A stretch of DNA of 64,000 nucleotides from Hamiltosporidium tvaerminnensis FI-OER-3-3. Its lineage: Eukaryota > Fungi > Microsporidia. Positions within the stretch are counted from its first letter, which is position 1; each line of letters starts with the position of its first letter. A program made the translations under genes and the position numbers. Below are positions 4,001 to 28,400 of the stretch, piece after piece. The notes under the pieces were generated by a model that saw only the letters and a list, made by a program, of their open reading frames with translations, had not been told where the DNA came from and searched no databases. The stretch covers positions 310,001 through 374,000 of the forward strand of contig CM061254.1 in assembly GCA_022605425.2 (NCBI GenBank). The letters are read 5' to 3'.

Positions 4001-5492
4001 ATACTCTCATCTAAAAATTAACAATACTAATATTGTCTCTTTATTCGTATTTCAGAGCAATTCTTTACCATATATGTGTTGATTTAAGCAAACATTGTGC
4101 AGAATGATGGTCTACGATTTTCATTAAATATACTTTTCGAAATTTGTAATATTTTTTAAATTAAAATTTTAATATAAAAAAAGTAAATAGAAGATTTATT
4201 AGATGACTAAAATGTAAAATTAATTAATCATTTATTACTTATTTTTTTTATATAACAGATTTATAAAAATCTGTAAAGTTTGACGAATGTTATCTAACCT
4301 TGCCTATATTTCAGAAACTACCAGGCTATATATAATAGATAACAAGCTGATATGCTATATATATTTGTGTATATATTTAAACATATAAGAAAAAAAGACA
4401 CTTTATGTTCCTGAGAAACACACTATATTTATTATATCAAACTGTCATCAAAAAGTTAATTTTAAACATAATTATAGCATTATTTGAGGAAAACAATGTT
4501 TTCTTATTCATTATTTAAAAATAATCGAAGCATATATAACAGTGTATCAGTTTATTTTCCAAGTCTTAGAAAGTAAATATGCTTATAATTTGTATTAGAA
4601 TAAAATCTTGCATTTTGAAAAAAAAAATTAAATATATCTTTAAAATATAAACCTAACGTATAATAAGTAAGAATAAAAAAGCCAATCATTAGAATATTGT
4701 TACAGATATGACTTTTTATGCCAAACCAAATGCACCCTACATTAGATCGAATTCAAAATGGTATTTTTTAGTTACAACATAAATATATCAAACAATTAAA
4801 GAGTTGCAATTCAAAAGTGATATTATCAACCAACATGCAAGCTTCATTAACGAATTATATACATTCTTTGTAACTATACTAAATCTTTCGGACAAATTTA
4901 TCAGATTAAATTTAGATTCCCGATCTTAACAAGCTCCTAACTTCATATATACGCTGTTTTATGTACAAATACAAGAATTCAATAAAGAAGTCAGGCAGAC
5001 TTGGAATCGAGTTATTTATAAACGAATACGCATTTATTTCCTTATTAAATATCGAAAAGAGTCGTTGCGAAAGTTTTATACAGGGGCCTAGAATAAGATA
5101 AAAATTTCTAATAAATCGAGGCTAACTATCCAGAAATAACACTAACAGTTCGGTAAATTATAAATGATACTCGACGTTTGAGTTCTATATTTTATGTTAT
5201 GAGTGACTATTTCTTTAATTTTAAATGTTTGTCCGAAAATAGTCTCTGGAAATTATTGGGCAATATATTATAGTATTTTTGCAGATCTTCTGCATGTAAA
5301 AAACAAATTTACAAATAAATTTTACCAAACTTTTATTTAGCTGTCATATAAAAGGCATTGGTTAAGCGATTAAATGCAAATCTAGGCTAGATTTATTTAT
5401 CTTAAGTTACAGATTATATATTAAAAAATATACGTTAATATATTGCCTCGTCCAGAAGAGATATTGACTAAACTCAAAGCTAAATTTCTCTA

Positions 5493-5721
5493 CAATACCC
5501 GGGCAGAATTAGCTCGATATATTCTCTGTTTGTCGTAAAAAGTGACTCAAAGGGACTAGTCTTCTAGTTTGGGGTTAGGCGTAGGGCTAACAGCCCACCC
5601 TTTAAAACCACCTTGTTACGAAACCTAAAAGTAAACAAACCCACTTAAAAGACCAGTGGGCAGTATCACCGAGGGGAGCCCAGGCTCGTACAGGGCTATA
5701 GTACCGATCATTATAATGATG
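5493..5721 (+). mobile_element. Short RTE-derived non-autonomous element (SINE-like), copy 1
   Basis: Colinear with copies at 15777, 23463 and 25180: gggcagaatt...attctctgtttgtcgtaaaaagtgactcaaagggact...ggggttaggcgtagggctaacagcccaccc...cccaggctcgtacagggctatagtaccgat, then an atgatg tail. Possible degenerate TSD ctcaaagctaa / ctaaaagcgaa. Confidence 0.8.
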
Positions 5722-8700
5722 CTAAAAGCGAATTATAATTTTTTATAAGACGTTTTACCATTTAATTTTTCGTTTGCTTTTAAACTACGTTAATGAAAGT
5801 ATATATCAAAACGGTAACTAGATTTATTTAACTTTATGTGTTCATTTCAAACCTCATTTTAATATTTTTGTTTTTGCTAATATTTATATTTTATTGATCG
5901 TTATATAAACAAAAAACATGCAATGTTTACATAAATGCATTTAATTAATGTTATATACACATAGAAAACAGCTTCATTTAAAAGGAAAGCCTGCTTAGAA
6001 AGTTTTTTTTAAAATTTGAGTTCTCTTTTTCGATTTTATCAAAAATTTAATAGATAATTACTATGCCATATTTTAGAGCATAAACTTATAATGATGTTTC
6101 CAAAGTTTTCGACATTTAAAAAACTATTTATATATAGATAGAATGCATACTAAGAAAAAACTAGATCTGAAACATCAATCACATTTAATAAACACATATT
6201 TAAAGAATTTCTTAAAAAGTCTGCTTCAAAAATTTTTATCTTTGATGAATGAAGAATTTAAAATATTTTTGTTACATCGTATGTTTGTTTCCGACTCGCA
6301 AAATAACGGTTTATGCTTTGATATTTTTTTTATATTTCTATTTTTTAATTTTTTTTCATTTTATACTTTTCTTTTTATTTGAACTGTAAATATTTTAATA
6401 AAACTATGCGATGATTTTACTTCTCGATAGTAAAAATCATTAAGATAAAATATATTCTTTTAGATTTTTTAACGAAATCACGCGAAACAATGAATAAATT
6501 CTTTTTCTATGTATTTGACTGTCATTATAAATTTCTTTATGAATTAAGAATATGTTTCATAACAGAAGTATGCTTCGGATAAGTTTCTATTCAGAATTTG
6601 ATCTGTTATAGATAATTACATTTAAAGATGTGGCATCTTAAGAAAATAAATAATCCGAGTATTACTAAAATTATTAAGTTAAAATAAATAACAAAAAGGC
6701 TGCACCCAAAAATGTTCGAATATTTGTTTGAAAGCAGCTTTTTATCTCTGAATGTATCATAATATAGATCTAGTTTTTTTCATCGACAAATACACCTGAA
6801 AATTAAGAAATGAGATCCAATATGAATACAGAAATTTCAAAAATAGCTCATATACAAAAAAACGAATGTGTTAGTTAATTCTTGAGAACAAAAAAAGTAA
6901 CTAACAATTTAAAAGACGCTTAGCATAAATTATTCTGTTATCTCATTACTTATAAATAATCTCGTTTTAATTATTGCATTTTATTATAATGATTCGGAAA
7001 TTATAATTTTATAAGAATTTAAGATATTTTAAACGATTCTATGATTTTAAACGTAAAATTAGCTCGCAGCTATTAAATTTAAATATCCCAAATCGTTAGT
7101 GTTCTACCTCGCCTCAGTTTTATACATATACTTTTTCAAAAAATTCTAAATATACATTAAACAATGCCATTTCCGGGTCTGTTTATTTCAGAGTGCTCTA
7201 TTTGAGTGACAATATGAAATAAAGTTTATTTTTACTAAATTATTAAGGGTTCTGGTTTGCAAGAGGATACTTTACACTAATAAACACAGCAAATCTCTTA
7301 TATCAATCTATCCATTTGGTTATAATAACTAAATAAATTTCAAGTAGAAATGCCAAAAAATATACTTAAGTTTAAAAGTATTAACTTTACATAACATATA
7401 TGAATTTCTTGTATAAAATTTACGATATAAAGTAATAAATATATTTTAAATTATTACTGCTGATTTCAAAAGCCCTATGAAACAATATAAATACTTTATA
7501 CTTTTTTATTCTAATTTATGTATAATACAATTTTTATGGTAAATAGCAACTCGAAAAGACATGGCTAGCCTTTTTAACTTATTTATTACATTTTTTTAGC
7601 AAACTCGAAATAATATATACTTTGAATTAGGTATTTTTTTATTCTAAATACACAGAAGTTAAAGAAAATAAGAGATTATTAACTTGGTACTAATCGAGAT
7701 TTTTTTCCTCCAATTCCGATTCCAAAAAATAATTTAACTTGTTTGAGCAATGTATAAAGCTTATTATTAAATGGCAAATGTACTTTAGTACCAATTCAAC
7801 GCCTTAATATAATTTCTTGAAGAAATACAGAAGATTATAAATTTCATTGTATGAATCGATAATTAAAAAAATTTTTAAAAAGAAATATTCTTGACTTCTA
7901 ATTCAAAATTCCAAAAGTGTCTAACACAAAAAATTCTCTTCAGCACCGAGATGTACAAGACGCTTGAAATAAATTATTGAGTATAAAAAGTTAACATGAA
8001 TTTTAACTGTATTTGCTTATATGTTTTATAAAGTACAAAAAATATATTTTTTTACTTGATAATTTCTATGTAAAACAGAAATGAAATTATTAAAAATTTC
8101 TTGAAGAACAATTCAACGTTTCTTAAAATAACTTGAAGCAATTATATCCCACGCTATTAGAAAAAACATTATCCCTTTTTTTGCTACAAAATCAAAATAT
8201 ATAAAACAATATAGACGTAAAAAATTGTTCTTCTATTTTTTATATGAAACCTTTTTCACGATTGATAAACTTTAATATTTTGTAGAGTTTAATCTTGTCA
8301 TTCTCAAATTTGTTCAATATAAGAATTACAAATTTTTATTTATAAGTTATATATTGAATCTTATAGTTAAAAACTTACTTTTCTGTTATTATATAAATGT
8401 GATATGTTATAAAGATAACTATATTTGCTGAACTTAAACAATTTTTTTAACCACAGAACCTAATTATAAGATTAAAAGCCAGTATATAAAGCATAAAATA
8501 GTATATTATAACCAATTATTGTTCTTTATTAAATTCAATTAGATTTTTAAAAATATTAAAAGTGCGATTAAACAAAAAAACTACTTCCAAGTATATCATT
8601 AAAGGATACAGTCCCATAATTTTTAAAAATTTGATTTTTTTCTATCAAATCATAATAACTTGTATAAATCAGACACTTTCACAATAAAATTTTTTAAAAT

Positions 8701-11499
8701 AAAAAAAAACTATAAATATTTCATATGATTTTTTTTAAAAATTAAAAATCTTTGAATTTGCTTTTATTTTTTAAATTTCATACGAGCAATTGAAAAAGAC
8801 TGATATTTTCTTATATAAAAACATTACGATTAAAAACATATACAGATATGGCATACCAACAAAGTTTCAACGATAAATCTGCATTTTAGTTTTCATATTC
8901 ATTTTTTAAACTTTAATTACGAAGTATCGTACATTCCACTAATTTTATTATTCGAATATCCGGAAGAAATGCAATCATTAAACAAATAATCTAGTTATTA
9001 AGATACAATAAACCTATAATTGATGATTTCATCCGAGAATTTTTTTGGTTTACTTTTTTTTGATGTTTTGCGAACATTTCATTCCTATGATCTATAAGTT
9101 GATCAAAAAAATGTCAAAAGTACAATAATTCATAGAATATAGTACAAAGACAAAACGTTTACAAGACCTAGAACTCGCTTTTATAAACACGAGCGTCCAG
9201 CAGGTTTGAAAAATATATCTTATTTCAAAAGCATCTAAGAAAAAATATAGCAGCAGCGAATATTTTTTTATAATTAGGTTTTAACTTATATTTAGCGAAA
9301 ATAAACAATTGGGTTTTATAGTAAGAATCTATTACATGTAAAAATTGCATCTTAAAGGCAGTTATAAAATTTCGACCACTTCTTATAAAATACTATTCGG
9401 GTTTCTAAATGTTTTATCTTATTATAATTCTTATTTTAGCGCCATTGAATAATATTTAATTGCAAAATGCATTTGTACCTAAAAAAATGAAAATATAGTA
9501 CTATATGGTATATATTAAAAATTTCATTTTGAAAAAGATGTTTTTTTGGGTGTGTTTATTTAATTCTTGGCTATAAATAGCACAATAGCATATTTTTTAA
9601 CACATGTTATAGACCAAGAAATCCTATAAGATACATTGATCGATTTTTTATTCAAAAATATCGCTATGTATTTTTAATCCCAGAATCGATTTCAGATTTG
9701 TAAAAATTACTAACATAATATATGGATTCTAATTTATTTGTTAATCTGATTTAATTTGTCAATAATTACATAGTTTCGAGCTTCAAGTACTATATGATAA
9801 ATTTTAAAAAGTATCCAATGATAAAACCAAATTCATGTTTGCTAGATATCCGATTTACTCTAGACCAAATAAAAGCTTAATATGTACAAAAGGCATATAT
9901 AAATTAATTAATAGACTTTTTTTTGTTTATAAAACCAATTTTACAAGAATAAACACAAACCAAAATTCAAAGTTATCGTACGAAAATCATTTCTTTTGTA
10001 TTCTATTGGTTGTACAATAATGAATATTACCGCTTAATTCTCGTTTAATCCTTTAAATAAAACATATCAGATATATCTTTGGTTTATAAACATTTTACCT
10101 AACTTTCTTTTCATTTCTCTATTTAAATAGATACAAGGACCAAACTAACGTCTTCTTTGCGACTTTCTATATCGTTATTAGACCATTTTTTTTTGTTAAA
10201 GGCTGCTTACGAATTACATGTCTAAAAAATCGTTCTCCACAAATTCTTTGCTCTTAATTTTGGTTTTTTTATGAACGCTATTTAAAATAACAGTTTGGAA
10301 TATCTCGGTAACTATTACTCGGTAACCATTTTTTGAATATAAATTTTAAGCCTTCTACTTTAGCTATAATGTTCACTTGTATGAGTTGATAGAAGCAAAA
10401 CATCGAGTCGAATTTATTTTCATAACAGTTTTGACTTAAATTGTTTTAAATCTATTTTTGATAAAAAGAAACGATAAAATATCATCATATTTATCCGATT
10501 AAAGTATTTGTGTTCTTAAAGGTAGTATTTTAAATTTTCGAAATGAACATAAATTTAAGGTACAAGGTTTTATTTTAAACATTTACAAAATCGTTTCAAT
10601 GCTAAAAAGTTAGCCTTAAGTCAATAATATTTACATTTCTTTGCAGTGTAAGGATTTCACCATTAATACAATGTATTATATTATTTTCATAAATAAAATA
10701 ACTAGAAAGGACCTTTACATCATATCGATATAGTAAAGGCATGTTGCGTCTAATCTAATATAAAACATTTTTGTTCTATGTATAAATGACATAGAATAGC
10801 ATTCTGATTTTAAAATAATATCTTAATCAAAATTGACGAAAGAAACAAAAGGTAAAATAGAGCTATAAGCAAAAAGAGAGGCTTTCGAGTGCAAATTTAT
10901 CCAGAAAAATGCTTCATTTTATTACAGCGGTATTCTGTAGACATTATAATTTGGATTTTAAGAAAGGATAGGAAGCTTAGTGTGCTGTCCTACATAAATT
11001 TTTTTTGTACACAATGAAATTTGAAAGTATAATAAATCATCATGCATTGTGATAAAGTTTGGGAGTAGGTCTATGGTGTTCGCTTTGTGTTGACAACAGG
11101 ATAAAACCAAAAAACATATATAATACAACATTTTATTGTAAAGTAACAATTCAATAATATCCAGAAATGATAATGAAATAGAAGATGCAGCATAAAAACA
11201 CTTTTCTACAGCTTAAATTCTTTAGCGAATAAAATAATGTACCAAACGACGCTTTTGGATTTAAAGCGGCAATATTTAGACTTATTACAACATCGAATGC
11301 TTTTGCGCAAATAAATTATAAAGATACTTAACAGAAAAAACATACATTTTATACGGCTTACGGAACGGACTGCCCTCAAATAAAAATCAGCTGAACTATT
11401 GAGAAATGCACACATATTCAATAGATTTGGAACATTGTCTTTTTTAAGTACTAATATCTGACTTAAAGGTCATAGCCATTTTAATTAAATTTCGGATAA

Positions 11500-13712
11500 A
11501 TGTTCCGACTATTGACCAATATACAGTATGCCAAACCGATAGAATCTTACGACGAAATGCGCAACAAAAGTCGTTGAGTTTAAAGTGCAAGGAAGAAGTA
11601 TATCACCAGATAACCTGTTAGAATCGGTAAGAGGAAAGCAGCGCATGAGAGAGCAGAACTAACTGAACATTGCCTTAAATAAAGATAAGAAAACAAACTT
11701 AAGACAACGTGGATTGATCTCAAAAAAGCGTATAGTTCAATAGATCATGCGTTTTCTTCACAGTATATCGAAAACATGTATTTACGGATAAGATCGTAAA
11801 TTTATTGAAGTAATAATATCGAAATACAGAATTGATACCAGAATAGGGCTTGAAAAAATCATGACCCAAAAGATTGATAGAGTTATTTTGCAAGGGAATA
11901 GTTTGTCACTATTGCTGTTTGTGCTGCGTATTTTTCTTTCAGCTGAAAGCTTAGCGAGAAATACACAAAGAGACAATACTAACAGATGCAGAATCTAACT
12001 CTACTAATCATCTCATTTTTTAGAGATGAACTTAAGCTCCTTTTGCCAAAGAGTTTAATGCTGGAGGAGATGACAGATGAGGTTAAAAAGTTTTTGAATA
12101 ATACAGTATTAGAAAAACCAAATTTTGTCAGCCATAAAGGACTCGTGTTGGAAAGATACTGATACTCTTTTTGGAGGTATAGGTGTTTTTCATATCTTGG
12201 AATAATATATGATAGCAGAGGAATCTCAACCTGTAAATCGTTCGAAGAAGTACAAAGCGAAATGATATTAAGTTGAATGACTTTGACGCATATGATTGGA
12301 TACAAAAGATTTCATTTCTGCAATCAATCAACATGCAATATCGTTAATCAACTATCACATAGGAATACTTCGACTGGAATTTGCTGACTTCTCTAGGTTA
12401 GATGATACAGTACAGACAGCGGGGGTAAAGAATAAGATACATTTACGCTCAAGGGGTAAAGAGTCTCTATATCTTTATAGAGCAGAACTTGGAAGAGGTC
12501 TTTATAATGTTGAGTTGCGAAACGAAGATATGCTTTTGCAACTTCTGAATAGTTGGGGAAAAGTAAAAAAATATAAACTAACAGAGTAGCAATTTCCAAA
12601 ATGGAGAATATCAATAAAACCAATTTTGTACAAATAAAAGGCTTCCTAAAAGTAAAATATTGATCGGAAAAAGGAGTCACTAGGAGGAAGTGCGAGGAAA
12701 CTTTACTTGCAACATTATTTAACGAAATAGAAAAAATAAAACTTCAATCAAATTTATATAAGGCTAGAGAAAACGAGCTTGTAAGTGTAAGTGAGTCTTT
12801 GAGATGGTTAAAGGAATTAAAGTGTGACCATGTGATGAAGCAGTATTCTGCTATATCTAGAATAGAAATGTATTCAGGGGCGCAGAAAGTGTGTTTCACC
12901 CTGCAATCAATCAAAACAACAGTCGTTCATTTTCAGCCCTCGATATGAAAAAATGCTTGGTCAGGACTATATTAGAGACAAAATAAAGCGGTAAGATGCA
13001 TACACTTACTCCTACTAAATATATAAAAATTCAAGTCCTTATAACGAATTAGAAGTCACTCGGTCCAAAAATCTTTATAACGAGTATGCAGAGATATGAG
13101 GGGAAACTGGATATAAATTGATGTCGAGATTCGGTGTAAAGACTCGATATATTTATTTTTGATAGGAGAAAAAACAAGATTCACTCATTGAAGTTGGAAT
13201 AACTTCACAAGGCTAACTTCAAACAGTCTAAACGGAGAAACTTAGAAAATATGACCTATTAGTAAATGAGCTGGATTTTATTTATAAGCGTAGTGTTGAG
13301 ATAATCCCTTATGGGATGACCTAGGCGGTATTGGCACAAAATACTATAATTCACTCCTTAGAAGACCGCAAATCCTCCATAAGGATGGGGTTACATCCTG
13401 TCGATTGTACTTAAAAAGACAGTCGAAACACTATCTTCATATCGACGAAGACGACTTGAGTCGTGACCAATTGCTGTGGAGAGTTTGGAAAGTTTGTTAA
13501 TAGGTATTATTAAGTGAGCCGAGATGTAAAACAACCAATACCCTTTTTTAAGCAAGTAGACAACGAGGAAGATGGGGCTAAAAAATAAAATACAAAACAA
13601 ATACGAAACACTTATTTTAGAAGACAAATACAGTGAAGGATACAAGATAAATATTAACCAAGAGTCGGATTTAGAGAAAGATAACGAAGGGCTAAATGTT
13701 TGGAATAATTAA
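11500..13712 (+). mobile_element. Decayed, 5'-truncated R4/Dong-clade non-LTR retrotransposon (RT, CCHC finger, restriction-like endonuclease)
   Basis: Motifs in the expected order across frames: WIDLKKAYSSIDH (~11710), QGNSLSLLLFVL (11891), NHL..(DD)LKL (~12006), YLG (~12193), AINQHAISLINYHIG and LYLYRAELGRGL (ORF 12296-12589), a degenerate C-x2-C..H region (~12890-12935), RQN for RHN (~12976), LIEVGI (~13184) and EKLRKYD (~13235). Many stops and frameshifts. Confidence 0.9.
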
Positions 13713-15776
13713 TCCATACGAGATAAATTTAAAAAACCCAGATTTTAATGGAATACTTTTTAAGGATAAATGATATTTAAATAAATTATGCTTTCGAAAA
13801 AACAATCAAAATAGTTATTTTACAATTTTTTTTAGAATTAAAACCGAAAAAAAAATCTAGTACAATAAATACAGTTTTGATTACGCTTATAGTTCATGCA
13901 TTAAACTCAAGATTTAAGGTTTTACTTTTATTAAAATGTTAAGTTTTTTAGTGAAAATTTAACTAGCAACTAGCTCTTTACAAATAAATATGAATGGAAT
14001 TAAACAATCATAACAATAAATATGCCTCAGAATTTCCTTAATAACACTCATATGTTTTTTAAATTGCAAGAATAATTCCGAAACGAACTTTCAAAGGATA
14101 AAAAGTACTGATAATGTAAAATTTTAGCAATGCATATTTTCCATTATTGATTTAGCGGCATTCAAAAAAAAAGAAGATATTTTTCAGAAATATTTTTTTG
14201 ATTTTTTAAATAACTATAAATCTCATTATTTCCAAAATATGGCAAACAATTTTTTTTTGGTTTTCTTTTACTAAATAGATATATTTTTTTAAATATAAAA
14301 TTAAATACATTGAAGCAACAAATCATACTGTCGAAGGAACTTAAACGCCAAATAAAAGTTTAAGATTGTATTCGAATAGAGTAACGTAACGATGATTATC
14401 TTTGGAGCGAAAGGGCCATATATATTGGAACAATACTTTGTAAATGGGCATTAATATTTTATCATTTTAAAAAAATTGTTTAATCTGAATGTGTGTTAAA
14501 GTAAAATACATGAACTTGTTGGAATTGTACGTTTGATGATTTGACTGATTATAAAGGTTTTATGGCGGATTTCAGCCTAATATTTTTCTAACAAGCGCGT
14601 TGTTGTGTTTCATTCAGGCTTATAAACACAGGTTTTTTCTTACTAAAATAGCAAAATAGATAATAAAATAATTCCATGCAAATTTTCCATATCAAAAAAT
14701 ATGATATATCCTGTTTCTGTAGCATAATCATTTTTTTAGATATTTCTAGGCATCTCAACAGATCAAAACAAACAAACAAAAACAATATCTGTAACAAATG
14801 TGATACGCAAGTAAAATTGTCAGTAAAAAGGCTCTAATTTTGCGAATGAATTCCTTAATATATCGATTTTGCAAATCAAATTGTTGTAATAATGTATTGA
14901 TTCATACCAGTGTGAAAAATATCCAGTACTCATAAATTACTTGATGATAGAATTGGGGTATTTTGAAGTTATTATTTTTTCACAAACCACAATTCTCTTT
15001 TAACTGCTAAAACCCCCAAAAATAACTTTTTTATATACCCATAAAAATTCTTTTAGGAAAAAACTAAACATATTTCGTTTGGCAAAAGCTTTAAGGCTAG
15101 GAAATTTTCTTTACAAAGAATATACTAATCATTATTACTTTAAAATAAATCAAGGATATATTTTAAAGACAAACATTCAAGAATCGTTGAATCGATAAAG
15201 TACCTTTACGTTCATTTAGACTATAGTTAAGGCGAATATTAGTGGATGTATGTGTCTCTACGTGTGGTGTATAAATTCTATAATTTAATGGCTTCGCAGT
15301 TTTGAAAATTATAATTTATAATAATGTTTTGAATTACCACCAATAAATGCTCTAGAAATCTCTAATAGCAAAATTAAAGAACATATTTTATCGAAGCGAG
15401 CAAGCTCTATCAATACTTTATAATAATATTGTTTATATCGATTGGCTTGGTGGTTCTGATCTTAAACAGTACCCTGCTATATTGCCATACTTTTTTTTGG
15501 CTTTCTATATTGAAATATACATGCTTTGTTCTTCTGCTTAATGAAAAAAAACATGTAACAATTAAGGCACTATACTTGCGATTTAGTAAATTATAAATAT
15601 TAAGCTAAATATTTTTTTAGGTTAAGATCATGAAAATAAAAAATTTGCATATAATTAATATTTTGAAAGCGCCTCCGCAAATCTAATATTTCAATCATGT
15701 AATAACATCACATTTCAACAATATTCGGGTAAAATATATATCGTTTTATTCTATAATATATAATAAAAATTCCTCT

Positions 15777-15938
15777 CCATGCCGGGAACAGAATTGGCTT
15801 GGAGTATTCACTGCTTGCTTTTTTTGGGTACGTTGGGCGTAAGGCTAACAACTCCACTAGAAAAATCAGGTAGGTGTATTTATTACCCAGAAAGGCCAAG
15901 GCTCGTACAGTAACTTTAGTGCCGATGATCCTGATGAT
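15777..15938 (+). mobile_element. Short RTE-derived non-autonomous element, copy 2 (internally deleted)
   Basis: ccatgccgggaacagaattggcttggagtattcactgcttg...gttgggcgtaaggctaacaactc...aggccaaggctcgtacag...tagtgccgatgatcctgatgat. Lacks the GTCGTAAGAGGCGAC hairpin and part of the middle. Flanked by aataaaaat at 15762-15770 and 15942-15950. Confidence 0.8.
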
Positions 15939-18900
15939 ATAAATAAAAATCTACGTGTATAGATCTAAAGAGTAAATAAAAAATTTTTTAACTACGTTAA
16001 ATGGACAAACAGTTACAGTGAGATTTTTACATAAAAATTGCGTATATCTCTAATTGCTGTTGATTTTACTTATACGAAGTTATAGTGTAACCGAGAATAC
16101 TAAAAACAGATTTTTAGGCTTTTATAGAGTGCAAATGCGATTCCCGGTTGATGCGCTTTTTATCTTTCGTGCGGAAAGTTTGCGAGAAATGCCGACCAAA
16201 CAAACAAAATTGTATTAGGACTCCATAACATGGCGAAGCCCTGATTCATCGTCGGATTGTGTATAAATGGTTAGCAAGGAGCGAGCTATTTAATAAATAG
16301 ATAGGATTCAAAGGTTCTCTTAATATATCTATAAATACGTTAATTACCCTGAATAGTGCTATAGTGTGTTTTTCGCTCGAAATAAGACCACAGATTATTC
16401 TCACATCTATTTATTCCGTTCTTGTTGTATTTGCGACAATTTTGTTTAAGTTCGGGGTTCGTTCTGTTATTGTCAAATTTAAATTAAATATGGTGTAAAA
16501 ATTCTGAATTGAATAATTTTTTTTGTGAAACAAGCAAATTCAATTAGCTTTCATTTTGGCTCGGTATTAGAATATATCGTGGATCACTTTATCGTTGCAA
16601 ATAAATAGCAAAAAATATTTTTAGTGATTATAAGACAACATATCAAACATCAATACAAAGTATCAGGGCTCATATGTTTGAATTATTAGACAATATATTT
16701 TTTTTCATTTGCATCCATAATTTATATTCCTTTTTTTTAGAAAAAAGGAAATCGCGTAAAAAATTTTATAAATATATACAGCAGATCAAACCTACGAAAA
16801 TTTTTAGTTTATATGATTTAAGTAGTTATAATCCGAGCTCTCTGTTTATATATCTATGCTTTACTTAACAAGTGATTTCATACTATAATTTCGGTTAAAA
16901 TTTATACTGAATCTATTAAAATTCCAATCGTTTCTTTTATGCAATCTTCAAACATCAAGTAAGCAAAAAATAGAAACGTTACACCAGTTCGAAATTTTTA
17001 TAAGATTTTAAACAATTTCAAAGCTCGATTGTTTAATTTTTTTCAAACAGACGTATTAGAGCTTATATTTGTGACGAATTTGAATTTCTTAGAAGGATTT
17101 TATCACCACCGGATGGTAGATTTATGATATTTATTGTATTTATAGAGAGAAATAAACCAACATAAACATACGAAGTATATTAAATGCTCAAAAAGCAATC
17201 TTTGCTTAAAAAGCCCGAAAAAAATATGCATATCAGAGAAATATATTATGACAAGGTTTGACCAAATTTTATTTGAAATTGTTTTTAGAGTTTTTTTTTG
17301 AAACCATTTTAACCAATATACGACACGATAGTGAAAACTATAGTTAATTATCTTAAAGAACTTAATATTTCAAAATTTGTATAAAATTTCGATTGCAAAA
17401 ATAGCTTTATCATAAGCATAAATATATGTTAATAGAACTTACGGAAAACTAAGGAAATCCCAAATTATTAGAATCAATACATTTATTCAGTGATCAAATA
17501 CGATTAAAAATAGAAAACTCTTATGCTAATCAATTATATAGGGGTTACGGGCAATTCAAATAATTGGGTATTATGTATAATGCCCGAGGCAAATTGGAAT
17601 TTGAAAAATTTTTTATGTCATTAAAAAAATCCGAAATATTAATAATAGAAAAAATTTCAGAAAGAAACATATAACCTAGCTTAAAATCTCTAATTTAATA
17701 TACGCAACCTTTAAAAAGTTGACGGGAGAGTGTTAGTCTTATATTTCGAAAGAGGCTGCACCGATGCAAGAAACATTATGGTATTTGTTCTTGACAAAAC
17801 AGATACTTTTAGATTATTGAGCACTAAAAATAGAATCTTGTTTTGGGTTTGCGCGAGGAACCAATCTACAATATGTAGTTTAAACTTTTTTTTATTTTGA
17901 AGAAATTCCAAAAGACGTCAGCTATTAAGTGAATGTGCACGAATGTTATTTAAGACCGCGTGCGAAGGTTAGTAATCGATAGATTTTCAAACTGAATGGT
18001 ATCTGATAACTGTAAAAGCTATAAAATAAAGGGCTTTGTGCCTCGAATTTCACAGAAGGAAACTGTTCTAATAATGTAAACCGTATAGGAATAAATGTTT
18101 TTCAAATGTAAATGTTTTTCGTTATAATTACTTTTTTTCTATAATGTTTTTACTTTAGTAATATTTCTTCTTATTTTTGTATATAATAAAATAATTATAT
18201 TAAAATTCTCAAATAAACCAATTTTTTTGGCATTATAATAATGATAATGCCCAATTTTTTAATTTTCCCGTAACATATATATTGCTTTTAATTCTGAAAT
18301 ATTTATTTCTTTTATATGAATAATTCAGGAATCTTTTTGTGTTATTAAACTAGTTTATCTTAGTTTTTTTTATATATGAAAATTTATTTTTAGATGACCG
18401 TTGCCTAAACAGATTATGACATTCTGACCAGGTATTAAATTGACATATTATTTTCAGGTAAAATCCGTGTGAAAATACATCTTGAATGGTTTACTACATT
18501 GAAATATTTCGAAGTGAGTTAAGATTTAGGCTCTTAATAAGAAAAAAACCTTTTGAAAATCAAATAAAAAGCCTAAACTAGGAAAAACAAAATCGATTTG
18601 GATCAGCAAATTTCCATTATAATATCTTTAGAATTGTATATTTTTGCCAACAAAAAAAATTCTAGCACTATTTTTCACTGATTTTTTTTGATTCTATTTA
18701 TTATAAAGACCCGGGTTGCAGTATAGCTGTTGTGCATATTTTTGGATGCTAAACCAAGTGTCAATTGTTCGAGATATTATAGTTTTGTAAAGAAAGTTTC
18801 AAGAATATGATAAGCAATTTAAAAAATACGAGTCATACGATTGGAATTGTTGGTTAGTAATATGTAAAGTGCAATTTGGGTTAATTTGTATCAATATAGT

Positions 18901-21900
18901 ATTTTTTCACCTTTTCTAATCTATGATGAACGATTTTAAAACACAAAGAATTCTAGTTTAAACATATAAAATGTGAATTTCAAGATCGCATAATATTAGC
19001 CTTATCCATATTAAATTTTTTATTTTAAGACAAAAGAAAAACTATAAATTTGATCTTCTCGAATACGTTCAAGCGAAAATTAAAATATTTTTAGGGTTTT
19101 CGTTGCTTATGATCTTTTTTATAAATAAACATAAAGGTTTATGGATAATTAGATTGTGGTTGATTTTTATGTATAAATGTGAAGTAAATCAAAACTAAAA
19201 TATAAAAATGAGATAAGTACTATTATAAAATAGATAATCTTTTACAGAATCATAAATCTTAACTTAATTTATTTATTTTTTATTTGTGCTTAAAATGATA
19301 ACCATTTTTGTAAACTGTTCTAAAAAAACCTTTTATTTTGACTTAAAGATTAAAATTATATGAACTAATAAAGAGCAAATTTAAACTTGCATTGTCGGAT
19401 ATATACTTTACACAATCTTTGTCACATTCTTAAATATCTCTTTTATAAGAAATATGTTAAATTGTATGACACATACCTGCAATGAATTATAAAAACTCGG
19501 TGACCGATATAACACCCTTAAAGATAAAGGATTACTCAATGCTGACATAAAGCGTAAAATCTCGCTATACCGATATAATGCTAAGGAAGTCTTTTTTTAC
19601 TAAGCTAACAATATTTATGATTCTTTTAGAAGTTCAATAACATTTTAATTTATATATTTTATTGAACAACTATCTTTCAAATTACATACTTATAACCCGA
19701 ATGTACTTTTTTGACTTTTATTTTTTCTTATTTATTTCTAAGTCATTTGTAAAAAATGGATATATGCGATTTTATTAGAACAGATTAGAGGATAATATAA
19801 AGTTAAACAAGTCAACGAAATTATCAAACTAATTCATATAGTTACAATAAAGGTTTTGTCTTAAATAGAATATTATCGCACGCTATTCAAAATTATGTCT
19901 ATAATTGTATATTTTTTAAATTATATTTTGCAACCTTGCTTCAAAATATATTTGATTTATTAAGAATTTTTAGTTTAAGTAAGATATTTTTTTCCGTAGA
20001 ACAAAGATAACTTTATTTGTAAAAATATGATAAATGAATTTTCATTAAAGATAACTAAATAAGTTTAGAAATCGCTTTAAAGATTTTGGTAAAGAAACCT
20101 AACAGGCTCATTTATTAGTTATGTGAGTGTATAACCATATTTGATACAAAAATATATGTTTTTCTATCTCATATCTGCTCTAATGTATCTTTAAAGATAC
20201 CTTATACGAGCAGATGCTCTTATATTCAATGTATGTAAAATCGAACAATTTCAAAAGAACAATAAACTATAAATTTTCTATTCTAATAAAATAAAAAGAA
20301 AAAGGAAAAAAACAATGAATTTGCTAAGTTTAAAAAAAATACTAAACGATAGAAAGTTCATATATAAAAAAACCAATCCCTCTTTTATATTAAAAAATCG
20401 GTTTTTTATGCATCACATGATTTATTAGGCGATATTTTGTAAATAATATAGTTTTATCACTTAAAGAAAATTCCAATTTACCTAACACTTTTTTAAAGAA
20501 TATTTAGGAGCTACAACATATATGTAAAATTCTAAATGAAAAAAATCTTAAAGTTTACCTGGTAAACGTTGCAAATATGGTATTTGTTTGTTTTACAAAT
20601 GTTTCGCAGCTAATTTAAGATGTGATTGCAAAGAAATGTTTATAAAACAAGAGTAAAATCAAAATAAACAATAAAGCTTTGTATGATTATTTTAATTATG
20701 ATTGAAAATAAATATTGTTTTGCTCTTAGCGTTTCTATACTAAGGCATAAATATATTACAAAGGAAACTAATTGATGCAAATAAATATTATATTTCATTA
20801 AAGTAGTTAAAAAGCCGGTATATTGAATATAATTTGAAAACACTATATGTAACTCATAAAGCATTTTGTGATGCATTTACTTTCTACTGTTTATACACCG
20901 ACGTATCTCTTTGTTTAATATTTGTGGTAGAACAAATGTTTAACGATTTTTCTAACGAACGATAACGATTTAAAATATTGCTACATTTAATTTTAAAATG
21001 TGATCTAAATATAAGATTCTTACACCCTGATATTATTTATTCTATTTGTTTTTTCTATACATAGATATGTATTTAACTATAATTTTTGATTTTTTTTAAT
21101 AATTTATCCTAACAACCCAAGTGTACGTGTGCTTCATCAAATTTCAAAATAATATTGTAAGAATTGAAATCAACATAAGTATAGATCAATATACTTTTCA
21201 AAATACAGCGCACGTATTTTTAAAATATATTTAATATTTGTTATATATCATCAAACATCATATTTTAACTAACATATTTTTCAATTCGTTTTTTAGATTT
21301 TGTTGCTCGAACGCTATGCTATTGAAATATATCAAAAAATTTAAACAATAATAAAATATTCTAAAAATGCGAAAAACAATTTATTAAGTCTTATTTCTAA
21401 TAAAATAAAAATATTATGTTATTTAAGGTAAAGTGATTTAGGTATGATTTGTGTGTTTATAAATATAATATAATCGCCAAATATAAATCGCATATGTTCA
21501 ATAGCACTGCATTTAGCTTTATTTTGCAGGTTCTGACATATTGAATGATTTTCTTGAGATTTTTACGTATAATATCTTAAAGAAATTTTTACATGTTGTG
21601 TCGAAAATTAGAAATATTTTGACATAGTATAGCTCAGAATTCTTCTTTCGGATTCGCCGCATTTAATAGTTCGTGCATTTTAAATTTTTTAAATTTTTAA
21701 ATTTGAGAAAAACATATAAAACCAGGCCTCCTTAGATATATTTAGACACAAAATCAACCTCTGAGCTAATATAATACTTAGTTTAGCTTTTTTTTCTGAA
21801 TTAAATTTAATAGAAAAATTCTACCTGTTTGTTTTTATCGTTATTGTTCCTTATCTTTTACTGCGTTCGACAAGTATACGGTTCTATTTATTTCTCATGC

Positions 21901-23462
21901 CCTTAGGTTCCATACTTATTTTATTTAGGTACAGATATATTTAATTTATTACCAGCGGAATTCAAACTTTAATTTTACACTAATAAATTTATTCTATACA
22001 AAAAGTATGCCAAGATTATAAATTTAAAATTTAAATAAAAAGATTTATAATTCATAATTAAACCTTTATGCGCATCAAATAAATGATGATGTTCTTGCAA
22101 TTTAGGATCAATATGCTGTCAGCATATTCAAAATAAAAAATTCTTCAATATTTTATTGAAATAGTTAATCTAGGATATGTTGTTATGTTTATAAATTTTA
22201 TATTTTAAAATTTTTAACATAGTCCCAAAACAGCTGTTCGTAACCTTTATGAAGTTTTATTTCCTACGGTTGTAATATCATAAAGTATGACAACTACAAA
22301 AAATCCAAATATACATAAGATTTTTATAACTTAAATTTTTCTAACGTTTTAGTAAATTTATTCATAAATAACAAAATTGCCATTTTATAAATACATTTCT
22401 CAAATCACAATCAATCTATCGAACTTATAAACACAGCTATCAATTTTAAGGTACAATCATGCAGGCAAAATATATTTATAAATAGTTCTAACACCATTAT
22501 GTTTTTTTTAATTTGGATTTTGGCGTAAAAAAAACAACTTTCTACTGATTTAATAGAACCGAAAGCAACAGTGCCTTTTTCTCTTTAAAACGTAGAACCT
22601 ATCCATTGGCTTTGTATTTTATTTTATATTCTAAATCTTAAAATAGTATAATTTCTATAACTTTTTCATTAAGGTCAAATATTCAAAACCTAAAACTTTG
22701 CGCTTGTATAAATTGCTTTACTTTGAATTTACTATTTGAATTTTTGAAAAGTATAATAGATAAATTTTAAGTTCCGTTTATTGCTTAGAGTTGGTATTCT
22801 AACTGAGCGTGCATAGAACCAATAAGATATTGAGTTTCTGTAAAAGTAGGCGGATCTCTATGTTAATTTTGAACGATTTGTGCTGAAAGAACCAATAAAA
22901 CAATATTTGATAGAATGCGAAGAAAAGCCAAAAATTTTAAAAACGAATAGCTATACGTTAATCTATAGCTTGAAAACTTACATCCAAAGCCCACTATAAA
23001 TTTTGATAAACTTAAAACAGTTTAAGCGCGAGGCTCATGATAAATTCAAAATCGTTTTTTTTGAAATTATAAAATTAGCCGGAATGTAGTAAATCTAAAA
23101 AAGACAAAATACTTCCTAGCATATTCTAATATTATCGTACCAATAGCACCTCTGCTCAGAATTTTTGATTTAATAAAAGATGAAAATTTTATCATTTAAA
23201 ACATCAGTATTCGGATGAAGCATCGAACTTAAATTAGAATATGGGTATCAACATAAAAAAATACAATATATTCAGAAGATAGTAAAAAAAACAAATTAAC
23301 CGTATTGCATTGTCAGACTATGGTTCTAAAATAATTGAATTTCTGCGTTGTGCCCTTTCCTTGCATTTATACAAGAACTCAAGTATAAATGATCGATATT
23401 CTAACTATCGTATGACATTCGGAATTTTTTGTTTTGATACATATTAGGTAAAGGGTTTTCTA

Positions 23463-23692
23463 CCATGCCGGGAGCAGACTTCGCTTTGAGTATTCTCAGC
23501 TGTCGTAAGAGGCGACTAAAAGAGACTGATCCTCCATGTTGGAGTTGGGCATAGGGCTAACAACTCACCCTTTAAAACTACCGGTTACAAACTCAATAAG
23601 TATACAAAGCCACTGGAAAAAGATCGGTTGGCGCTATTATAAGGTAGGCCAAGGCTCGAACAAGGCTGTAGTGCCAAGGATGAATGAATGAG
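23463..23692 (+). mobile_element. Short RTE-derived non-autonomous element, copy 3 (best preserved core)
   Basis: ccatgccgggagcagacttcgctttgagtattctcagctgtcgtaagaggcgactaaaagagactgatcctccatgttggagttgggcatagggctaacaactcaccc...aggccaaggctcgaacaaggctgtagtgcc followed by a (GAAT)n-like tail. The 3' end matches the typical RTE-clade GGCTGTAG(C/T)GCC + short microsatellite terminus. Confidence 0.85.
23467..23525 (+). ncRNA. Candidate structured (ribozyme-like) pseudoknotted RNA module at the 5' end of the RTE-derived element
   Basis: Stem GYCRR/TTGGC with a GAGCAGAA loop, a downstream TCTGCT-like segment complementary to that loop, hairpin GTCG-TAAGAGG-CGAC, then TAA and a purine run that can pair with TTCTC. 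Pair-preserving changes occur between copies. Activity not demonstrated. Confidence 0.5.
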
Positions 23693-25179
23693 TTAGTTCA
23701 AAAGTACCTTATGAAACCTTTTCGAATCCCCAATTTATATATTTAGTTATTTTACATTCATTTATTATGATGAATCAGTCTGTTCAACTTGCGATATATT
23801 GAATGAGTCTTTTGCCTATCAAGAATTACGGCATATTACTTAGATCAATAGAAAGATTGTAAATCTTGCAATATAGAACACAAACAATATATTTTATAAC
23901 ATCTATGTATTTTAATACTTTATTTTCCACGCTAATTGTTTAAAAAATATGTTTTATTTTATAAGGCAGTTTAAAGAGCTTTTCATAATATACACACAAA
24001 AAATATTGAAATCTTTTACTTTCTGAGATAATGATTTGCCTTATGTACGCCATAATTAGATATATAAAATTCTATCGTTTGCTTCGTAATAAAATGGATT
24101 TTAAGAGTTATAATAGTAAGTAAACATGGATGCGACATATAAGTAACAAAGATATGAAATTTAAGAAATTTGGAATTAATTAGGCTTATGAAATATAAAA
24201 TGATATTGTTCTATTATGCACGATAACGCATTTGGATTATTATTGTATACATTTTCCTATAATAGAACCTATATCTAATGAGCCCGTATAATTTTTCTTT
24301 AGATATTTCTAACGATTTTTATGAGTTATTTAACGCAAAGAATAACATCGGGAACGAAATCATTATTTTTTAGCTATTTTAAATTTTAAAACTAATATAA
24401 ATTTTTCTTTAGGTTTCGAATTTATTTGAAAACAAACATATAAGATCTTTAAGCATAAGTTTGGGATATTACAATATATTGATAATGTACCTCATCAATG
24501 AAACTCTTATTTATATTAATTGTGTTTTGGAGTATAGTAAAAACTCATGAATTCTTTTATTGTGTTTCTATTTGATCTAAAGTGTGGCTAAATATATATT
24601 GGTAGTACCTAATTAGTGTTTTGAAATTGTATCAAACAAATTTAAATAATATTTTAACTAGCTTTCGAATAATTCATTATTTCAAGGTAACCAGCACATT
24701 TAACACATATCTATTATAAATATTTATTCGCTAAGATAGCACAAAATTTTGCATGATTATATAAATTTTACAAGTTAATTAGACAATTGTTGCAATCATA
24801 AGTTGTTTAGAACGTAGAACAAAATGTGATCTTCTCATTGTACTAGAAAAAAGGTTCTTGAAGAAAAAAATCTATAGAAACAATAATTGAAATTTTATTC
24901 AAGTGAATGAATCAGTAGCATTCAATAAAATTGTCCATTTTAAATTATAAAAAAAATTCAAAAGTGTTCTAAGCGATTTTATTAAAAAGAGATATATATT
25001 TCATTATAGACCATTATATCTTTTACCTATTCTACCTTACATATTTTTTAGCATATGTTTTTTAATAGCAAAACAAATGAGTTGAATACTTGCAGTATAT
25101 TCTAAGCTTGGATCAGGGCTTTGTTTTTCTCTTATCGAACTTGTGGATTGAATAAAATAATAAAATAAAAATATCTGCA

Positions 25180-25410
25180 CCATGTCAAGAGCAGAATTGG
25201 CTTGAAGTATTCTTTGCTTGTCGTAAGAGGTGACTAAAGGGACTGGTCCTCTATGTTAGGCGTAGGCTTAACAACTCACTCTTCAAAATCACTTGTTACG
25301 AATCCAAAATAAAGAAACTAAACTACTGAAAAGAGATCGATTGGCAGTATTACTAAAGGAGAAAGAGGTCTATACAGGGCTGCAGTGCCTATGATAAAGT
25401 AATAGAAGAT
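25180..25410 (+). mobile_element. Short RTE-derived non-autonomous element, copy 4, with 14-bp target-site duplication
   Basis: ccatgtcaagagcagaattggcttgaagtattctttgcttgtcgtaagaggtgactaaagggactggtcctc...tacagggctgcagtgcctatgat. Exact direct repeat aaataaaaatatct at 25163-25176 and 25411-25424. Confidence 0.85.
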
Positions 25411-28400
25411 AAATAAAAATATCTTGCTATGCTTCTATATACTAAATTTATATTTTTTTTGGAAAACATTTTTTTAGATATCATAGAAACACCTAGCTTC
25501 TAATTTAATATTTTTTTGTTTTATAATTATCAAATTTATGTCTACTGATTTGATAAAACTATAAAAGAAAATCTATAGTGGCGTAAAACTTTACTTAGGT
25601 CAGTATAATTACACCATTTGTTTTTCCATTTCATATTTTCATTAAACTCTACTACATTTAAGTTTAAAAAGTTCTTTTCTTTAAATAAAAATTTGAATAA
25701 AATTTTGAATGCTTGCAGTGACTGGATGTCAAACTAAGGTATTCTTTAAGATTGGAATATGTAAAAATTATATCCCGAATTTTTTAAAGATTTTTTGCAA
25801 TCTTACTATAATTTACTGTTGTAGAAGCTTTGACATATCTCGCTGTTTATATCGTTTATTGCGCAAAATTTTAATATTTTTCTATTGATTCTATAATTAG
25901 GTGGAGAAAGTATCACTCTATTAAAACAATCTGATGGGCAATAAGTTTATTTAAATAGTGTGAATATCATTATTGCCTTTTTACTCGAATATAAACCACA
26001 ATGGATCTATAAGATAAGACATAATAATATTAGTTACAATGGATAAAATAAGCAAATAGAAAACTACCATTTTTAATCTTCGAAACTGAAGAGTTAAATA
26101 TGACTGGAATAAGAGAGAGGATTCTTTAATCAGTTTGAAAGATCTCTAGATTATACAAAGCAAGAAGCATAGCGGAGTTCATCATAAACTTTTCAAGCAA
26201 GAAAATTTTAGATACAAAATATTGTAAAGAAAGTGAATGTCTAGGATCAATATATTTAACGTAAATATTTACTATTTTTAGAATTATTAAAAAATCGAGA
26301 CAAATTATGAGCGTCGCTTTTCGATTGCTAGAATTGTGTCGTAAGCCATACCGAATCACTGCCAATTATCTGCTCTCCTGTTAAATTTAATGCTTCGTTA
26401 ATTTTTCTTTTTAAATTGTGGCTCACTTTTTTACTTAAGCCAGGGCTTTTGGTTTGAAAATGAAGCCTTTCGTTAACTGTAACCCAATCGCCTAAACTTA
26501 TTTTCTATTATCAAACTAATAACAAAGTGGCAGTTTTTATTATTTTTTTTATACGCAAAGGAAATAATAACATTAACCTAGAAACCTTTTCATATATTTT
26601 TTCACAATAGATATATTTAATATCTATCGCGGATCTACTTTAAAAAGAAAACCGTAATTTTGTACACACATTAACATTTCTAACATATGGAACACCTGCC
26701 ATCATTCATTGAACTCTAACTACGCGACAGAGTAATTAAGTTTTAGCATTTCTTGTCTTGGAACAGTCATTAAACCAATCTCTTTACAAATTTTAAAATA
26801 TAACCTGATTATATATCAAATAATAGTTCTGAAAATATATCCGCGAGAAAGACTTTTATTTTTACTATATATTTTGAAAGTCATATAATTTCTTCTATTT
26901 GATAATTAAAATTGAATTTCAAAGGCATAATTTGTTTATAGAATAAAATTGGTAAACGAAACACATGGTGTTTATTAATTTATGTACGATCTTGTAAAAT
27001 AATTTACTTACGAAAATTTATATACAAAGAGATATAACTTTACTTAAATTATTGTTTGGTAAATAAAAACAGGGTATATAGTTTTGTATTTTTCTATATC
27101 AAAATACATTTTACAGTTAATTATAACTCATAAACACGGTATGTTCGAAAATAAAGAAACATTACAAGAATTTGAAGTAGATTTTCTAACTAGTTGGTTG
27201 TAAGAAATAAAAAAATATTATTTTAAAAAGTTTAGATGTATCTAAGATTCTGAGTCTTTTTTTATGCTTTATAAAATTGTTTTCGACAAAATAGGTTTCA
27301 CAAAAAAAATATATTTAGCTGGATGAAAAACAAATTTTTTTTCAACATTAAAAAAATAAAAAAAAGCTTTTCATGTTTAGACATAATTGTATCGATTCGT
27401 TAAAAGTAAAATGTGTTTCAGTTATTTAACATGAATGCTCCAAAAGACAAAAATATTTTAATTATTATCTTTTCAAAAAACTATAGTATAAATTTCGATG
27501 TTTTTTGATGAATTTAATACGCCTTTAGTGTTTATTATGCAGGTTTTTTAAATTTTCATATAATAATTCTTTTATAACAGAATTTATTGGCAACAAGCCG
27601 ACATAGCTCTATATTTTAGCTTATATTTTTGGTGAAGGAAAACAAATCGCATGTAAAGTTTTATATATATAAAAATCTAGTTAACATTTTTTGCGGCATT
27701 AATATAAAATTTTTGAACAGAAAAGAGTTTGCGATTCGTCTATTTTTTTCATCAGTTTCTATATTCATAAAAAAATCGGGTTTATAAAGTATTATGGGCA
27801 TAGACATGTTCTCTTTGTTGTTTTTTCTTCATCTTATGGTTTAATCCTTATCTGGCCCAAAATATATCTCAAACTATGAAACTATAATGAATTAATTTAT
27901 TTTAAAAAACCAAACCCGTAAGTGTTAATAAATATTATACAAAATGCTTCTTAATATCATGTCTATACCCTTAAACTAATTTTGTTTCAAATCAAAGACC
28001 CGGATCGAAAAACAGTTATTGATTGTAAGACTATCCTTTAGATTTTAAAATACAAATCATTGTGCAAATGTCTTTTATTTTTTGGGATATATGTTAGAAA
28101 ATAGATTTATAAGTGAATATTATAATAGAATTATAATGTACATAACATTAAGTGTTTTTAAGCTGCATATAACAAAGTTTTGCCATGTGAGCCATAAAAA
28201 CGTGTATTTCAATCTAGTTAAATCAAATAAAGTCTAAAATTTCAATCGAATATTAGCGAAAAAATGTGCTTATAATAGACTTAAGCCTTTAATTCGTTAA
28301 TTTTAAATCTAAAATTTGAAAATATATGTGTCTAGAAAAATTGAGAATCTTAAGGTTGGAAATATAAAGAACTTTTATTTAGCATTCAATAATGGTTGCC

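Follow-up and report, generated by a model that had tools for sequence, protein, structure and literature searches.

A dispersed short element of the microsporidian Hamiltosporidium tvaerminnensis, very probably derived by internal deletion from an RTE-like LINE

We analysed a 64,000-nucleotide stretch of the Hamiltosporidium tvaerminnensis FI-OER-3-3 genome (positions 310001-374000 of contig CM061254.1, working name C9), hereafter the window, which carries four copies of a non-coding repeat of ~235 bp. The repeat is very probably a non-autonomous retroelement lacking long terminal repeats (non-LTR) that was born once, when a 3.1-kb RTE-like long interspersed nuclear element (LINE) lost ~2.86 kb from its interior. 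The window has a G+C content of 25.7%. Its positions 1-43000 hold no open reading frame (ORF) of at least 110 aa on either strand, all five such ORFs being at 43.2-62 kb, and the four copies therefore sit in a gene desert that is large for a microsporidian.

Alignment confirmed that the four copies noticed by the first-pass annotation are colinear and on the plus strand; identity to the family consensus is 77-91% over their alignable parts (Table 1). The common 5' start that had been described for them is real but was placed ~7 nt too far downstream, the element beginning with TTCCCCACC or variants of it, ~7 nt upstream of 'accatgccggg'. The 3' end is common to the copies as claimed and reads ...GGCTCG(C/T)ACAGGGCTGTAGTGCC, followed by a simple-repeat tail of the GATG/GAAT type. 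Target-site duplications (TSDs) had also been reported; the one at copy 4 is exact over 14 bp and that of copy 2 spans ~13 bp with one indel (ATATAATAAAAAT / ATATAAATAAAAAT), but none was clear at copies 1 and 3. The possibility that copy 2 represents a short subfamily was rejected, since its structure was found in no other genomic copy and hence reflects a one-off deletion.

Table 1. Copies of the short element in the window and the TSD of copy 4 (positions are those of the window).
Feature	Position	Strand	Description
Copy 1	5486..5721	+	Full length; old subfamily; 81% to subfamily-A consensus; tail GATCATTATAATGATG
Copy 2	15770..15936	+	Internally deleted; retains 48 nt at the 5' end, a segment from the middle and the 3' module; tail GATGATCCTGATG
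Copy 3	23456..23691	+	Full length; subfamily A; 91% to consensus; tail AAGGATGAATGAATGA
Copy 4	25177..25410	+	~4-6 nt missing at 5' end; old subfamily; 77% to consensus
Upstream TSD of copy 4	25163..25176	+	AAATAAAAATATCT
Downstream TSD of copy 4	25411..25424	+	Exact 14-bp repeat of AAATAAAAATATCT

The assembly searched comprises 21,638,905 bp in 17 contigs, in agreement with the published description (21.64 Mb, 17 contigs, 26.6% GC; PMC10542269). The dispersed family proposed from the window proved to extend genome-wide, with further copies that have the common termini and TSDs. Copy 3, used as the query, returned 326 first-look candidates, and the 40 of these that were scored had nearly full-length coverage at 83-88% identity. 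A 20-nt motif from the 5' part (up to 3 mismatches) matched the genome 278 times (131 on the plus and 147 on the minus strand) and on every contig listed, versus a single match for the reversed control, while a 23-nt motif from the 3' tail (up to 2 mismatches) matched 111 times versus none in the control. The repeat family is thus far above chance expectation. Subtraction of the 14 full-length LINEs described below from the 278 motif matches leaves at least about 260 short copies. Among 41 non-redundant copies, an automatic search detected TSDs in 31, with lengths of 10-17 bp and a mode of 12-14. The target-site profile, built on the 27 of these 31 copies that passed the score and flank cut-offs, has T at -1 (20/27), A at +1 (22/27) and T at -10 (19/27); the sample is small and the A at +1 is in part an ambiguity with the last bases of the tail, so that this profile is suggestive. 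Insertion just upstream of genes was not seen, as none of the 41 copies has the start of an ORF of at least 100 aa within 100 bp downstream, the nearest being at 586 bp.

Short copies of subfamily A differ from their own consensus by a median of 7.5%. The remaining fetched copies, including copies 1 and 4 of the window, are 76-88% identical to the subfamily-A consensus, and the tails of these non-A copies (GCCGA...GAT) are nearer to the LINE tail than subfamily-A tails are. An isolated match of ~47 nt (72%) to the 3' module of the short element lies in locus L073 (2465-2511; C12:295664-295710), at a distance of 850 bp downstream from the ORF of an unrelated LINE, and probably represents an ancient tail fragment truncated at the 5' end.

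Dispersal of this kind could in principle be passive, with the copies being pieces of segmental duplications, or could be that of a DNA transposon or miniature inverted-repeat transposable element (MITE). Some copies do lie within larger duplicated blocks (L061/L063, L003/L004 and L013/L024). This holds for a few pairs only, and in most copies the flanks turn unrelated exactly where the element ends. TSDs of variable length, the lack of terminal inverted repeats, a simple-repeat tail at one end only, and the occurrence of copies in both orientations on all contigs listed argue further against these origins, which we regard as almost certainly incorrect. L061 and L063 (C1:1620500-1626100 and 1689000-1694600) are 94.8% identical over 5.6 kb and ~68 kb apart, and L062 (C1:1656600-1662250) groups with them; all carry short copies. 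So do L003/L004 on C8 and L013/L024 on C1, which are inverted pairs of 99.3% and 96.7% identity, respectively. Such multi-kb blocks fit the large multicopy repeats of the genome paper.

The parent LINE was first met as a decayed 3' end beside a short copy in locus L005. With this piece as the query, ~24 LINE 3' regions were found, all of which end where the short element ends. Two other routes to the parent were tried and rejected: the 30 loci with the strongest matches to the reverse transcriptase (RT) domain RVT_1 belong to other LINE families and none is similar to the short element, and all 12 places fetched through the tail motif were short copies rather than LINEs. In locus L074 the LINE occupies 1181-4277 (3097 bp); positions 1-168 of the short-element consensus match its 5' end (L074:1181-1348) at 84% identity, and positions 160-232 match its 3' end (L074:4205-4277) at 78%. 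In a second copy, L076 (1163-4220), consensus positions 18-159 match 1163-1306 and positions 161-236 match 4145-4220. Both modules of the short element therefore originate from the LINE, and the bipartite origin suggested by the first-pass annotation, an RTE 5' untranslated region (UTR) fused to an RTE 3' end, is borne out at the termini of both loci. A search with the 3097-bp LINE recovered 14 full-length copies (3.03-3.10 kb, 74-82% identity), all of which start and end at the common termini, as well as ~9 copies truncated at the 5' end; three LINE loci were examined letter by letter in full. Short copies align only to LINE positions 1-168 and 3025-3097, and the junction between the two modules is identical in every short copy aligned. 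It follows from this single junction that one deletion derivative was amplified. The short element is accordingly colinear with both termini of the long one across one junction, as in an internally deleted LINE derivative. At the junction the two LINE matches overlap by ~9 nt around a GAAA-rich stretch, which would be compatible with a microhomology-mediated deletion or with a template switch of the RT.

The 5' module corresponds to LINE nt 1 to ~160. It has a CCC-rich start (TTCCCCACCATG), an ATG at nt 10 and a mini-ORF of 14 codons, and it stops where the endonuclease coding region starts. The first piece of the LINE that aligns to its intact relative P0106 (see below) does so from residue 31, which places the start of the LINE ORF at about nt 150; the 5' module is therefore essentially the entire LINE 5' UTR (~150 nt). 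A known transcription signal of microsporidia is a CCC-like motif that immediately precedes start codons and goes with 5' UTRs of less than 7 nt (PMC2803860), and the resemblance of the CCC-rich start and ATG to this motif may serve as a lead. The 3' module (~73-75 nt) comprises the 19 codons that close the LINE ORF, then TAG as the stop codon and a GATG/GAAT repeat tail of 10-20 nt. Read in frame in the short element it gives ...LEKDRWAVLLREAKARTGL and then TAG (ending ...EAKARTGL), and the matching LINE frame ends ...EAKTRAGL before its stop. Two putative hairpins are predicted in the 3' module.

A short, abundant, non-coding element with TSDs and a tail of ~73 nt shared with a LINE resembles a canonical short interspersed nuclear element (SINE), in which RNA polymerase III (Pol III) transcribes a head of tRNA, 5S or 7SL origin and only the tail is taken from a LINE. 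The head found here is of another kind. Its whole length (nt 1-168) is colinear with the 5' end of the LINE at 81-84% identity (L074 and L076). ARAGORN found no tRNA in seven loci, and Rfam returned nothing at the gathering score in the window and nothing above chance at E up to 10 in the 5' regions of three elements. No Pol III-type head was thus found, in line with the earlier remark that tRNA-like A and B boxes are not evident, and we give hardly any credence to a canonical SINE.

The first-pass annotation had instead suggested that the defined 5' end may come from RNA self-processing. In this reading a self-cleaving ribozyme in the 5' module, either hepatitis delta virus (HDV)-like, as in L1Tc/NARTc and some RTEs, or of the twister type, would free the element from read-through transcripts without an internal promoter. 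One exact 5' terminus is indeed common to the LINE and the short copies, and there is precedent in the trypanosome elements L1Tc, NARTc and RIME: a stretch of 77 nt at the start of L1Tc, which NARTc and RIME also carry, acts both as an internal RNA polymerase II (Pol II) promoter and as an HDV-like ribozyme (PMC1874656 and PMC4035085). The proposal nevertheless fared poorly. No covariance model of a ribozyme family, HDV-like and twister included, matched at E up to 10 at the 5' ends of two short copies (L007 and L006) or of the L074 LINE, a search that a divergent or new ribozyme could escape. The predicted fold is no more stable than that of shuffled sequence (z = -1.33), and a possible 5'-closing helix of the subfamily-A consensus appears from the alignment not to be kept in L074. 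Self-processing by such a ribozyme is in our judgement very unlikely.

The coding content of the LINE points to an RTE-like parent. A profile of its C-terminal pieces found 8196 relatives in a library of 1.84 billion proteins. Full-length relatives have 954-989 aa, are encoded on contigs of 3.0-3.1 kb and contain the domains Exo_endo_phos and RVT_1; among those with names, the best are 'endonuclease-reverse transcriptase' proteins of cockroaches (39% identity). The relative P0106 is intact, with 989 aa, Exo_endo_phos at 25-257 and RVT_1 at 548-776. LINE pieces align to its residues 31-141 (45%, E 3e-32), 176-318 (40%, E 9e-33) and 940-989, the last reaching the C-terminal EAKTRTGL, and all pieces are colinear. 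P0106 itself has hundreds of relatives of 950-1030 aa on contigs of 3.1-3.6 kb, the named ones being from flies, butterflies and cockroaches. The interior of the LINE resembles the RTs that two further LINE families of this genome encode, and a word search with the endonuclease piece yielded only H. tvaerminnensis hypothetical proteins and one JGI hypothetical protein. The hallmarks of RTE elements are a single ORF of ~990 aa with apurinic/apyrimidinic (AP) endonuclease and RT domains, a 5' UTR, a 3' UTR that is extremely short and made of simple repeats, and TSDs (PMC2887409). The LINE agrees with these in having a single AP endonuclease and RT frame of ~990 aa with no ORF1 of normal size, only the 14-codon mini-ORF being upstream, and in its length of 3.03-3.10 kb (~3.2 kb being expected). 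Its TAG stop is followed by a tail of 10-20 nt of the GATG/GAAT/GATAA type, and the L076 copy has a TSD of ~13 bp. Architecture therefore supports the assignment of the parent to an RTE-like clade, as had been supposed, and RTE-X and RTE-BovB calls at the RepeatModeler level have been reported in a microsporidian genome (PMC13174016).

On these grounds we propose that the short element was mobilised as follows. Transcription would begin at nt 1, probably by Pol II, through signals that the 5' module retains and that the parent LINE would use likewise. Such a start is suggested by the one exact 5' end that LINE and short copies have in common and by the fact that a derivative keeping only these ~160 nt was amplified about tenfold over its parent. 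The endonuclease/RT of the LINE would recognise the shared 3' module in trans, and the RNA would be copied into AT-rich DNA by target-primed reverse transcription, leaving TSDs of 10-17 bp that usually begin with A(T/A) directly after a T. The repeat tail probably base-pairs with the nicked, T/A-rich target and so helps priming. The shared termini, single junction, TSDs, copy numbers and LINE decay on which this scheme is built are direct observations, from which mobilisation in trans, tail priming and the start at nt 1 are inferred. A more speculative idea, which we hold to be rather unlikely, is that the ~160-nt 5' module is a self-contained start signal functional in a microsporidian, in the form of a compact internal Pol II promoter centred on the CCC-rich start and its ATG at nt 10 or, less likely, a self-cleaving RNA of unrecognised type. 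If true, this would explain why the derivative outnumbers its parent about tenfold, and it would provide a portable, sequence-defined transcription start for organisms without genetic tools.

An autonomous RTE with both termini had been expected, and a LINE sharing both was found, but every copy of it is decayed. Among the 42 C-terminal candidates, all of which were scored, the longest open frame has 203 aa (192 aa within the parent LINE family), and nearly all carry stops, several in each. No autonomous partner survives in the assembly, and there is thus no intact counterpart to the partners of RIME and NARTc. Because all LINE copies are decayed and none has an intact frame, the pair of LINE and short element appears to be extinct, a fossil family. 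The ~260 or more short copies outnumber the ~23 LINE copies about tenfold. LINE copies differ pairwise by 18-26% versus the median of 7.5% in subfamily A, so that the short element may have had its last burst after the surviving LINE copies arose.

Several points weigh against the derivation from an RTE-like LINE and its mobilisation as set out above. The LINE behind the last burst may have been lost, or may have been a different relative. The copies sampled are skewed to subfamily A. Pfam alone fails to recognise the decayed LINE pieces, giving only a weak RVT_1 match, and membership of the RTE clade is argued from architecture and from unclassified insect relatives at ~39-45% identity rather than from an RT phylogeny. 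The putative promoter in the 5' module is deduced only from the precise shared 5' end. Three runs of RNA raw reads gave zero reads at window positions 22800-25900, a result that has no bearing on expression; run X6 (contigs) matched only the repeat itself.

Other LINE families of this genome differ from the dead RTE-like family in that they may still be retrotransposing. Many of their copies are apparently intact, with open frames of ~1250-1300 aa (e.g. C12:292565-293284), and more than 60 places in the genome match RVT_1 at ~100 bits. RT-bearing LINE families with open frames of 843-939 aa also occur ~2-60 kb from contig ends (L031, L034-L040 and L042). These subterminal LINEs lie on the plus strand at C9:2559, C9:6055, C4:7827, C7:16249, C13:50903, C13:59462 and C14:50722 and on the minus strand at C2:1800794 and C3:1392065. 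They point inward, those at left ends being on the plus and those at right ends on the minus strand, and some end in poly(A), a pattern that would fit telomere- or subtelomere-associated retrotransposons.

The kind of element described here is already known, although it is apparently undescribed in microsporidia. The first-pass annotation was not aware of a SINE-like family in this group, which fits the searchable literature: neither SINEs nor such derivatives are mentioned in the microsporidian transposon papers PMC4202319, PMC7313128, PMC10542269 and PMC13174016, a comparison of literature that lies outside Repbase and Dfam, and the term 'SINEs' has zero occurrences in PMC4202319. The finding is well founded and of use in annotation, its mechanism being conventional. 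A quarter of the H. tvaerminnensis genome is classed as 'other/unclassified' repeat (PMC10542269), and our results provide a defined pair of LINE and short element for a large-genome microsporidian, making it possible to annotate and date ~260 or more copies of the short element as well as 23 of the LINE. Insect elements are the nearest intact relatives of the LINE, in keeping with earlier reports that microsporidia and animals have exchanged transposons; an identity of ~40% to these elements is no evidence for recent transfer.

The usual definition of a SINE requires a Pol III head (PMC6007223). The element has none and thus falls outside this definition; judged by its sequence, it belongs to the internally deleted LINE derivatives of the RIME/NARTc type. 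In trypanosomes, RIME and NARTc are short retroposons that arose by internal deletion of the long autonomous elements ingi and L1Tc, respectively (PMC3820030). Like them, the H. tvaerminnensis element joins the 5' end of a LINE to its 3' end, is non-coding, has no Pol III head, shares an exact 5' terminus with the LINE, has TSDs and would be mobilised in trans. Unlike them, it descends from an RTE-like parent rather than from the ingi/L1Tc clade, carries a simple-repeat tail in place of poly(A), and has no detected signature of a promoter/ribozyme of the Pr77 type. With both partners decayed, the pair is nearer to the extinct SIDER/DIRE state than to active RIME.

The parent itself is much like lepidopteran RTEs (PMC2887409), with a length of ~3.1 kb, a single AP endonuclease and RT frame of ~990 aa, and a stop a few bases from a simple-repeat tail. 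As in the RTE-related SINEs of the Au-like, Bov-tA and AfroSINE types (PMC6007223), the tail of the short element takes in the end of the ORF that encodes the C-terminus; those SINEs have tRNA-type Pol III heads, whereas here the 5' UTR of the LINE itself forms the head. The TSD start and the tail repeat are compatible, as in the RTE group, and the enrichment of T ~10 nt upstream of the TSD (19/27) recalls the published RTE insertion signature. The TSDs start with A, however, and not with T as in RTE-related elements, and the host is a microsporidian. A last comparison is with 5'-truncated RTE copies, which had at one time been taken for SINEs (Malik and Eickbush 1998, as cited in PMC2887409). 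These too are short and RTE-derived, keep their 3' end intact and have TSDs and a simple-repeat tail. The copies of the present element are no random 5' truncations but all have the true 5' end of the LINE and one fixed internal junction, so that it was a specific deletion derivative that was amplified. Microsporidia thereby join the lineages in which a LINE has spawned a parasitic deletion derivative that retains the LINE's own 5' UTR.

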